Shown: positions 10,446-32,400, counted from the stretch's first letter. The stretch is DNA of 64,000 nt from Blastocystis sp. Blastoise (GCA_039096225.1 JBBPEB010000028.1:868001-932000), one strand, 5' to 3'. The notes: generated by a model from the sequence alone, not told the origin. Numbers and translations: made by a program.

Positions 10446-11266
10446 ATGAGTGATCAACATCCTGAACGATCTATATTTAGTATGTAGCTATTCATATTTA
10501 TAGAGACGATACATTAAAATAACATTTTGAATATATTTAGTTGGTAATATTCCATATGATGCAACAGAAGATGAGCTTCGAAAGATCTTTGAGACTGCAG
10601 GACCTGTAGTCTCATTTAAGTATATATTTTAATTTATTATATTAACTATGAACACGAGAATCTTTTTTTTTTTATTATTTAAATTAGTTAAAGAACAGAA
10701 TTCTACATTAAATAAAGGTTATGCATTTTGTGAATATCAAGATAAGCATACAGCAGAATGTGCTTTGAAGAATTTACGTGAACAACAGATTAAAGGAAGA
10801 ATATTAAGAATTGATACAGCTGATGGTAAACGAAAGCGTGTCAATGATATAACTCAAGTAAATTTTTATTTAATTCGAATTATATGTTGAATATTTTTTT
10901 GATATATGTATATCTAATTTTTTTTGTTGAATAATTATTTTTTAATATTATATTTTCTTTTTTTTTGTTGAAATATAATTTTAAAAATAGAATATTATTT
11001 ATTTTATTTTGTTGAATAATGTTAAAGAATAGAATAGTATCTATTTTATATAGGCTGAAGATAATTCTAGTTTATCAAAATTTAAGCCAAAAGAGATTTG
11101 GGAGTTTGTTGCGAATATGAAGCGAGAATGTGTAAAAGATCGTGTATTTGCTCGTAAATTACTTATGAATTATCCTCAAGTTGTACAATTCTTACAAGAA
11201 GCAGAAATTGATCTTGGAATACTTACTAGTGATATTCCTGGAGCTAAAGTTAATAAAGCTATGTAA
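10446..11266 (+). CDS. CSTF2: Cleavage stimulation factor 64 kDa subunit (CSTF2/Rna15): RRM plus hinge
   Basis: [32 protein letters not shown]...[10 protein letters not shown]...GRILRID; hinge-like [11 protein letters not shown]; intron 2 needs a GT-AA junction. Confidence 0.88.
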
Positions 11267-11951
11267 GTCTACTTATGTTTTTTATATAAAGTCATGTTTT
11301 ATTTATTATATATTGCTTTTTTTTTAAATAATAATATTTTTGATATATATATAGATAAACTTTAGTGAATAGTTTATTTATTTTTTATTTTTCCTTTTTG
11401 TTTTTAATATTTGAAAATTTTATTTTTTGTTCATGCTATATTTATGTTTTGTTGTTTTTCAAATAAGCTAGTTATGCGTGAATTAGTATCCTTTTCTTAG
11501 TAAAATCATAGAATAGTTATATTATTATTTATATTTCATTTAAATTAGAATTTATTGAATTAATGTTTGTAAGCTATTTTGAATTCAAAATGAAATGAAT
11601 AGAACAAGTTTTCTCTGTATATATAATTATTTTTGTGAGTTCTTTATATATTGCAAATAATAGTTTAATATCTGGATTTGATTCTTTTCATAAAGATATT
11701 GATAATGTTAGAATAGAATATATGCAAATAATTATCGATTATTCTTTTATCATCACTCTCATAGCACTTATTTATATATTCTTTAAAATAATGCATCTCA
11801 CTAGTCATACAATAAGGAATTCATTAATGAGCTGCTATATTCAACTATAAAAACATAAAATAATAAAAATCTGAATTTTTCTGAATTATTTAATTGTTAC
11901 TGAAACAAAAAAGAATGAATACTTTTTTTCATTTATTTTCATTATAACTAA

Positions 11952-29209: not shown

Positions 29210-29440
29210 CTAAATAAATCAATAATGAAAATATGTTCTTAATAGCATATACATTTCAACAATTCTTCTTTAGAAAAGTAAATACGTTATTATTTTAAAA
29301 AGAAAGGAACACTCCAGAAATCGTTACAAAATTGAAAAAATGAAAATAGAGTGGACTGTTCGTTTAATCCCGCGAAATTACTTTTCATAACTGGAAAAAC
29401 GAAAATAATTAGATAAGGTTTTTATCATTGAATTTGAAGA

Positions 29441-32400
29441 ATGCCAAGTTTATTTGATGATGAATTATGTACTGAGATTCAAAAGAATTTAATTTCAATT
29501 CATGAAGCGACTCTGAATAAAGATGTTTCAAAAGTTGTCAATTATTTGAGTCAAATCACATCTGAAATGAATGAAATAATCGATAAATATATTGAAATGC
29601 ATGGAAATGAACCATCTAAAGATACTACTGTAAATATCTCGCAAGTTGCGTTAATTCGTGCATCTCTTGCTCTTATGGATGTATGGGGTATTATGCCATA
29701 TTTAAAACCTTATTGTGGTCAAAGAATAAATGATGGCCCTTATGTAAATTCATTTGTTGTCACAAAAGAACAATTGGAAGTCATTCAAACAGAAATAAAA
29801 ACAATGCCAACTCCAAATTCTTTACATTTCTTATTAAGTGTTATGATAAAAGCCTCTAAAGTAAGATATCTACAAGAAACTGTGTTTATTCATTTCTTTC
29901 CTAATATACTTGCTCTTTGTTTATGTTTACAAAATTCACAAGATTATAAATGTAATTATATATAAAATATTATGAATATATTTAGTATTTATATTTCTAT
30001 ATAGTATTCATGAATTCTGATATTCAACAAGATATTCAGTTTTTTTTTGATTTTATTCAGAATTATCCTTTTCAAATGGTACTTCCAGCTTGCTTTAAAC
30101 TTATTAAATATGTATATATATTATTAGATATTTTATATTTAATATATTTATATATTTATTTTATAGATTATATTATATTTTATTTTGTATATATATATAG
30201 GGAATGAAAACACCTCAGTATATACGTGAATATTGCAGTTATTTGATTGGTTACTATACTTCATTAACCAATGGAATTCTCAATATTTCACTCTTACTTC
30301 TTTCAGATACTATGAAACCCACTATTAATATATATATATATATATATATATATATATATATATATATAGGAGATGATATCAATTGCTCGAGGAATAGGTT
30401 CATTGCCTCCAAAAACAGATATTGATATATATTATAAATCTATATGTAATCAAGTATATATATATATATATAGGTATATATATATATATATAGGTAACAT
30501 GTTATATAAAAAAGAATGATAAACACTTAGGTATAGAAATGATATATATAATAAAGAATATATATGAGAAGCATCCTATGTATCTATATAAATATTTATA
30601 TAACTGTTTATTCGATCATTTGAATTCATTCTTAAAACAACCATTCTTCTCTTCTCTAGTATTACGTATATATATATATATAATCTATCAATATATATAT
30701 ATACGTAAATCAATATATATATATATATATATATATATTATCACTATAGCTGTTCCAACAGAAAATGTGACTAGTTCTTCTCTTTCTTCTTCTTTCTCTT
30801 CCTTTATATATATATTATCTCTTACCACTCCTCCTCTATCTCTTATTCAATCTATATCTATCTATATACCACTTTTATTCTATATTTACACATTTGCAAA
30901 ATCAATCAAGTATTTATATATATATTATTATTATAATTATTATATATATATATATAGATCGTATATGTCTTCACCATTAAGAAATATCATACTTACATAT
31001 ATAAAGCTTTCTCCCGCGGTTATTCCTACACTTTTATATATATCTACTGGAGATGGATTAAGAGAAGATTTACATTATAAGTATATATATATATATATAT
31101 ATATTATTATTATTTATATATAGAATGAAAGCATCTAAAGATGGTGGAATTGATCTTATTCCCGCGGTTAATGAAGATAAAATAGAAGAAGAATCTCCTT
31201 CGATGACTATTCCATCATTATCTTTTAAAGAAGATGATTGGACGTTGAATTTAGAATCGAAAGTTGATTGGTCGAAAGAAACATCGTGTTTAATTGATTT
31301 GTTAACTGTCGTTAAAGATACTCCGATTGTAGGCGATCTATTTATCGAATTACTTAAAGAATATTTCACAGTTCGTGTATTTCCTTCTCGATCAACAAGT
31401 TTATCTATAAATCCTTTAAAAATAGTTCAAATAATCATGGGAATGATTGAAGAATTTCAAGAGCAATTATTTTCAAAGAATATATATAGAGGTTTGTCGT
31501 GTATATATAATATTATTTTATATATACATCAAAGTCTAATGAGAAATAAGGACATTCCTCAACCTATTCATAAGTATATATATATATTTTATTTTTATTA
31601 TTATTTATTTTTATGAATATATTATAGAATAACAACTATATATATATATACATAGGATAGGTTATTTGGATATAAATGAAGAAGAAGAAGAGAATGATAT
31701 AGATATAGATATAGATATAGAAGGAGTTTTTGATATTATTAATATATGTACAGGTATATAATAAGTATTATGATCGTATAACTCGAATAATGATAATCAT
31801 ATATGTATATATATATATAGAAATTTTAAAAAGTGTTTATTATATGTTAGATGATGTAGAGATAGAGGATAGTGATTCCCGCGGGAAAACAGAACATAAT
31901 CATCCGATAATACAGGAGGTCGAAGAAACCAAACGTGAAGTTCAACAAGTCAGTATATATATATATATATATATATATTGTTAGTTATCTAGTTTTTAGA
32001 GTTTTTATTTTATATAACTGTTTTGTTTTTTATTATTTTTATGAAAATTTTTTTGTATTTTTAATAATAAATATAGTAATGAATATAATAAAGATATATA
32101 TATATATATATATAGTGTCTTCAACAAAAGCTGTTGATGAGCTGGAAGTACTAGAAAAGCAACGTCTTCTAACGGAAATCAATAAATATATACCATTATT
32201 ACAAGACATACAAGAATATGGAAGTATATATATATATATATTATTATTATTATTATTATTATTATTTATATATAGATATGTATATTCTATACGAGCCTTG
32301 TCAAACAATATCTTTTTATATAAATGAGTGTATTAAAACCCTCAACGCGTCACTTGACAAGAATAGTGATGAAGAAAAGAAAAAAGTTGAAAGTAGTTTA

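Follow-up and report, generated by a model that had tools for sequence, protein, structure and literature searches.

We examined a window of 64,000 nucleotides of DNA from the tortoise isolate Rus-B, Blastocystis sp. 'Blastoise' (GCA_039096225.1 JBBPEB010000028.1:868001-932000), in which four putative introns have a terminal dinucleotide that differs from GT or AG by one base. They lie in a CSTF2-like gene (J1), a gene for a protein with TPR repeats (J2), an Aurora kinase gene (J3) and TANGO6 (J4), and their coordinates are collected in Table 1. The window corresponds to positions 868001-932000 of contig C5 in a 33.34 Mb assembly of 34 contigs with ~22-23% GC, and gene models were searched one exon at a time. 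An earlier note on this DNA had proposed that all four junctions are forced by conserved proteins. We found this to be so for J1, J2 and J3, based on PDB 1p1t, the Pfam TPR_1 profile, and PDB 5dt3 with the NCBI protein P0001, respectively. J4 has to be withdrawn from the set because the NCBI protein P0121 skips it.

The J1 intron reads GTATAT...TTTAA. Its upstream exon gave a gapless alignment to residues 14-38 of the CstF-64 RRM (PDB 1p1t), and the downstream exon, translated from 10684 onward, matches the same structure beginning with residue 43, so that its first residue extrapolates to residue 40. Since the flanking exons are placed at residues 38 and 40, exactly one bridging codon is required, and it is formed by AA (10618-19) and A (10683). 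An AG at 10686-87, 5 nt past the J1 acceptor, falls within the TTA GTT codons of a conserved Leu-Val, and the other GT-AG pairs at this junction, which were enumerated by hand, resulted in a stop (10620-10658), a frameshift or a deleted beta-2 strand. A gene finder that allows odd ends chose J1. In a count of microhomology, the final 6 nt of the intron (ATTTAA) were found to duplicate the end of the upstream exon. A genome search for a second copy of the CSTF2 region gave low-complexity matches only, and no independent copy of J1 or J3 turned up in two exact-pattern scans of metagenomes.

J2 (ATATAT...TATAG) interrupts a gene in which TPR repeats were recognized; the name TTC14 is a label of the earlier note and is unconfirmed. 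In the second repeat, the upstream exon stops at TPR_1 profile position 9 and the downstream exon opens at position 11, with the codon GC/A, split across J2, supplying position 10. No GT was found near the end of the upstream exon, and a gene model limited to canonical sites reads through 70 nt of TA-rich junk and adds two mini-introns. The microhomology count showed that the first 6 nt of J2 (ATATAT) duplicate the start of the downstream exon. The intron preceding the J2 exon (16920-17100, + strand) carries a tandem pair of ~60-nt units (...tttatattcattattgtttcagttattctataaa...).

At J3 (GTATAT...ATATAT), the upstream exon ends at residue 186 of PDB 5dt3 and the downstream Asp of the DxWxxG motif is residue 188, therefore exactly one residue must intervene. 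Exon 1 of this Aurora kinase is 100% identical to the NCBI protein WA158_001839. Across the junction, the NCBI Aurora protein P0001 reads HDHT-A-DIWCLG, and exact mapping of P0001 on the window permits only a TG-TA, GT-AT or TA-TG placement. The P0001 join, which comes from an RNA-seq-guided annotation, is the one that had been proposed in the earlier note, and a CAG ending at 21722, 4 nt past the acceptor, is unused. The join is most likely supported by RNA, as ab initio predictors could hardly yield a GT-AT intron. RNA-guided annotation fixes the join but does not show the intron's last base: spliced RNA never shows an intron's own terminal base, and RNA reads therefore cannot distinguish G from A or T at intron ends. 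A paralogue (P0003, contig C16) has an intron at the codon and phase of J3 that reads GTATAT...TATAG. We conclude from this shared position that J3 is an old, ordinary intron whose last base here reads T. Additionally, an intron-less, transcript-like contig from ENA ERZ13405080 (L002, 961 nt, ~45% GC) carries an Aurora kinase gene whose product has 73% identity to that of the window, and this GC-richer relative keeps the Ala at the J3 codon.

The fourth site depends on an exon-like island in TANGO6. The coding sequence of the NCBI TANGO6 protein P0121 (976 aa) has 17 introns, each of them GT-AG, and passes straight from 30111 to 30370; because it bypasses the island with a canonical GT-AG intron, J4 is not forced. 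The island has a GC content of 30% versus 3-6% in its flanks, its codon score is inside the range of exons, a perfect TATAG acceptor precedes it and its donor reads AT. J4 is best read as marking an exon with an A-reading donor that is skipped in the annotated transcript, and the island would be either a cassette exon or an exon in the course of loss following a change in its donor; no relatives of TANGO6 by which to judge the skipped exon were found. TA runs occur at the intron ends of ~60-70% of TANGO6 introns. Another intron of this gene (30454-30493, + strand, 40 nt) consists of two identical 20-nt GT(AT)8AG units, and it is removed whole by the NCBI model and cut into two 20-nt introns by the gene finder.

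Table 1. Odd-ended introns and related features. Positions are those of the window unless contig C5 is named; slashes mark exon borders.
Feature	Position	Strand	Description
J1	10620..10682	+	63 nt, phase-2 intron in the CSTF2-like gene; assembly reads GT..AA
J2	17231..17515	+	285-nt phase-2 intron within a TPR motif, AT..AG in the assembly
J3	21574..21718	+	145-nt phase-0 intron of Aurora kinase, GT..AT in the assembly
J4	30330..30369	+	(AT)19AG, 40 nt; intronic only with 30201-30329 as an exon
Exon-like island	30201..30329	+	43 in-frame codons, skipped by the annotated TANGO6 transcript
Canonical intron of the NCBI TANGO6 model	30112..30369	+	GT..AG, 258 nt, covers the island and J4
Odd introns of UMP-CMP kinase	C5:766184-766293, 766399-766477 (= L028 8184-8293, 8399-8477)	-	AT..AG and GT..AT
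CHMP1-like candidates	C5:792938-793037, 793107-793230 (= L031 4938-5037, 5107-5230)	+	GT..AT and AT..AG
Classic U12-type AT-AC intron	42855-43015	+	starts ATATCCTTT; TTCTTTAAT 6 nt ahead of AC
GC-AG intron, DNA ligase gene	50839-50976	-	aag/GCATATAT...TATAG/gct; flanking peptide agrees

A purpose-written gene finder, which admits termini with one mismatch at a penalty of 10 nats, was run over 264 kb comprising the window and 200 kb upstream. Within the window it returned all four J sites and the GC-AG intron of the DNA ligase gene. Most of its extra candidates were artefacts with in-frame canonical sites 3-9 nt off, and codon scores did not separate forced from optional cases, hence no genome-wide rate is estimated. 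Forced cases number ~3 in the ~150-170 introns of the window (~2%), which lowers the rate of about 4 in 150 that had been claimed. Inspection left one clear extra case in the 200 kb upstream, a UMP-CMP kinase gene in which two of the five introns are odd-ended. Its GT..AT intron (...CAAAC/GTATAT...(AT)n/ATACTC) is followed by no AG for 17 nt downstream, and its AT..AG intron (...CAAAT/ATATAT...TAAAG/) has no GT nearby. For the CHMP1-like candidates, the first has an in-frame canonical alternative by read-through of a TA run, and no support for the exon was found in PDB or Pfam.

Among the verified cases the change is confined to the terminal G and never affects T+2 or A-2. Where the terminus adjoins a TA run, the G is replaced by the base that continues the alternation, with A substituting for the donor G and T for the acceptor G. 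Of the changes in the window, three out of four are G to A, as had been stated before, with J1, J2 and J4 reading A and J3 reading T. The cases are also clustered, the two odd ends of the UMP-CMP kinase gene being <300 nt apart and J1-J4 lying inside 20 kb. For J1 and J2, the altered base and the five adjoining it are a copy of the exon on the far side, and five copied bases on a given side were reached by 1.4% of 148 control introns; such copying does not hold at J3, J4 or the UMP-CMP kinase introns. We considered that spliced short reads had overwritten the terminal G during polishing. This would suit J1 and J2, and it was rejected because it does not suit J3, J4 or the UMP-CMP kinase introns and because the polishing reads given in the Rus-B methods were DNA only (PMC12129017).

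The terminal bases of J1-J4 are read here from a collapsed Nanopore R9 consensus. Rus-B was sequenced with Nanopore R9 and Guppy 5 (Lind et al., Genome Res 2025, PMC12129017), and the reads were assembled with Flye --meta followed by racon (x4), Polypolish (x3) and POLCA (x1) with MiSeq reads (PMC12129017). GenomeScope gave a strong diploid signal (PMC12129017). The annotation drew on STAR junctions with at least 3 reads, StringTie and BRAKER3, with Mikado scoring that required introns supported by RNA-seq (PMC12129017).

We asked to which class of intron the four sites belong. The earlier note had reported no U12 5′ motif among them, and this was borne out: J1-J4 start, in order, with GTATATAT, ATATATAT, GTATATAT and ATATATAT, all begin RTATAT like most major introns here, and the motif RTATCCTT is absent. 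U12-type introns that tolerate AT-AG, GT-AT and GT-AA ends would share these terminal dinucleotides, which match the odd termini of human U12-type introns, and a minor spliceosome is present in the genome. U11 (62.9 bits) and U6atac (63.8 bits) were detected above cut-off and U12 (46.8 bits) below it, all three genes have conserved regions for binding the 5′ splice site and the branch site, and Blastocystis ST1 has several hundred minor introns. However, all four starts are RTATAT instead of RTATCCTT, no TTCCTTAAC-like branch site was found in J1-J4 at a distance of ~10-20 nt from the 3′ terminus, RTATCCTT is not enriched in the window, and the Aurora paralogue of J3 is a plain GTATAT...TATAG intron. 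Moreover, the true minor intron of the window (42855-43015) retains ATATCCTTT...TTCTTTAAT-N6-AC and shows the minor spliceosome here to work with standard motifs. We consider the U12-type explanation largely refuted and very improbable. The U6atac gene itself (L009 1501-1617, C21:544821-544937, - strand) has GAGCCGAGAGAAGG in place of the Rfam consensus GAAAGGAGAGAAGG; this stretch presumably pairs with the minor 5′ splice site, and the minor intron of the window starts ATATCCTTT.

The resemblance of J1-J3 to major introns is close. They begin RTATAT and close with (TA)n or T-rich sequence, in agreement with the GT-AG introns, 26 in all, of P0001, P0003 and P0121, and they are like ordinary U2-type Blastocystis introns in having GTATAT beyond position 1 and a TATAG-type 3′ context, and unlike them in that one terminal G reads A or T. 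None of J1-J3 has the GT or GC with AG of U2-type termini, and every placement that preserves the frame is non-canonical. Homology to an undisputed GT-AG intron was found for J3 only; the join itself is supported at J3 by the RNA-seq-guided NCBI protein, and at J1 and J2 by protein homology. The 5′ end of U1 (AUACUUACCU) and the ACAGAGA box of U6 are canonical. With such a U1, AUAUAU would pair very poorly, at about three positions.

We favor the reading that J1-J3 are ordinary U2-type introns that would be excised exactly at the positions given in the earlier note, while the allele actually spliced would have a normal G at the terminus, and the A or T would derive from the collapsed consensus of a diploid genome. 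That the spliced allele has G, and that the assembly displays a broken allele or a consensus error, seems to us somewhat likelier than its opposite. As to how the G was lost, a heterozygous site with the broken allele retained in the consensus is our tentative guess, and a residual Nanopore or polishing error is a rather unlikely source. We infer that a G beside a TA run would mutate, or be miscalled, toward the base that extends the run. In support of this reading, the assembly is of Nanopore R9 origin, polished with MiSeq reads, and has a strong diploid signal; the J3 paralogue is GT..AG, U1 and U6 are canonical, and the terminal G alone is altered. A broken allele is further suggested by the clustering, since neighboring sites would be phased on one haplotype, by the AGs 4-5 nt past the J1 and J3 acceptors that go unused, by the skipped J4 exon and by the signature of mutation at repeat edges. 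To our knowledge, every spliceosome would use a nearby downstream AG if the authentic AG were truly gone. Polishers do not alter sites at which two bases are valid, which fits the broken-allele version. Finally, in ST1, which was sequenced in a separate project, the AT-AG, GT-AT and GT-AA classes are absent from ~35,000 introns (PMC5608401), and the introns are 98.3% GT-AG, 0.5% GC-AG, 0.16% GA-AG and ~1% U12 AT-AC (PMC5608401).

Several observations weigh against this reading. All four sites adjoin unique exon sequence and no frameshift occurs in the exons, thus short-read polishing worked right beside the sites, which weakens the version with a plain error. The earlier note had named polishing errors beside TA repeats as its main caveat; the R9 origin favors a plain error, and J1, which is not beside a TA repeat, and the clean exons speak against it. 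Because TA-run ends are normal here, an adjoining run is no special mark of error. Broken alleles, if common, predict in-frame stops in exons, and none was seen in the mapped genes. It is also important to note that the evidence consists of assembly, annotation and homology.

Alternatively, the termini could be real and homozygous, and the major spliceosome of this very AT-rich lineage might still splice, perhaps inefficiently, introns that have lost their first or last G by decay to A or T; we regard this as possible and doubt it. Stated for this organism, the major spliceosome of the tortoise lineage, with U1 and U6 unchanged, would accurately remove the ~1-2% of introns that lack a terminal G and bypass a nearby AG, a proposal that we think a shade less likely still. 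The sites would have to be marked in some other way, and exon definition, a G(TA)n...(TA)nG intron layout, or a U2AF-type reading of the acceptor context can be proposed. Such relaxed splicing would explain odd ends in a polished assembly with clean adjoining exons, a forced fraction of ~2% in the window, an RNA-guided NCBI Aurora model that prefers the GT..AT join to the CAG lying 4 nt further on, and the AT..AG and GT..AT introns of UMP-CMP kinase in the adjacent 200 kb, which have no AG or GT nearby; the ability of C. elegans to splice at a mutated AA acceptor also favors it. However, with canonical U1 and U6 an AUAUAU donor must be used and exons must be ligated after A or U, a G1-to-A change stops the second step in the systems studied, and the unused nearby AGs demand an unknown means of site choice. 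The annotation leaves out the J4 exon, clustering within genes is unexpected from a general relaxation, and no such class has been reported in Blastocystis ST1. The earlier note had taken a relaxed major spliceosome to be implied by the four junctions. This implication does not follow, as the joins are supported but a broken allele or a residual error in the collapsed consensus of a diploid genome fits equally well, and U1 and U6 are canonical.

Two further explanations were weighed. It had been suggested, as a speculative alternative, that A-to-I editing of pre-mRNA converts a terminal A to inosine, which is read as G and restores GT or AG. Three of the four changes are indeed G to A and the genome has one gene with an A_deamin domain, but the T at J3, which excludes editing as a general repair, and the T in the GT..AT intron of UMP-CMP kinase are beyond such correction. 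The lone A_deamin gene is uninformative and looks as an ordinary tRNA deaminase (ADAT1) would, an ADAR-type architecture was not shown, and there is no evidence of the required double-stranded structure. We consider editing very improbable. Wrong exon models, with canonical sites used at the cost of small protein insertions or deletions, would be helped by the in-frame GT-AG alternatives at J1-J3, which are cheap by coding potential alone, and by the canonical alternative at J4 that the annotation uses. Yet the alternatives at J1-J3 lose the RRM beta-2 strand, break the TPR repeat or lose the kinase DxW motif, and the NCBI protein confirms J3, so we judge mistaken models to be quite unlikely.

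Under the favored reading, in which the spliced allele keeps its G, these are ordinary introns with allelic or consensus noise, and the case is already known. Relaxed splicing does have relatives in other systems. At AG-independent 3′ splice sites of C. elegans, an AG changed to AA is still spliced at its original position, which is marked by an upstream consensus. That outcome follows from mutation and is inefficient, it does not concern a standing share of 1-2% of introns, and changes of the 5′ G fall outside it. In Fritillaria borealis and the euglenids, non-GT-AG introns are precisely removed, most introns are affected and the termini vary widely, whereas here only the terminal G differs, ~2% of introns are involved and one canonical end is always kept. 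In euglenids, short border repeats blur the intron boundary, as they do at J1 and J2.

The explanations differ in what they would mean. If relaxed splicing were true, a novel form of major-type splicing would be at hand, and the terminal G-G contact would be inessential for exon ligation here. Odd ends that are real and homozygous would provide a natural set of AT-AG, GT-AT and GT-AA introns on a canonical-looking spliceosome, with which the role of the terminal G pair could be tested, a surprising result for the mechanics of splicing. Should the differences be allelic, this would be a clonal diploid protist with many half-broken genes in which the edges of TA repeats are mutation hot spots, and should they be errors, they would expose a systematic weakness of a published assembly that affects gene models.

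Two long 12-nt microsatellites, at 13179-13640 (+ strand) and 51303-51600 (- strand), contain open frames of the form (LFIY)n, and these are low-complexity DNA and not genes.

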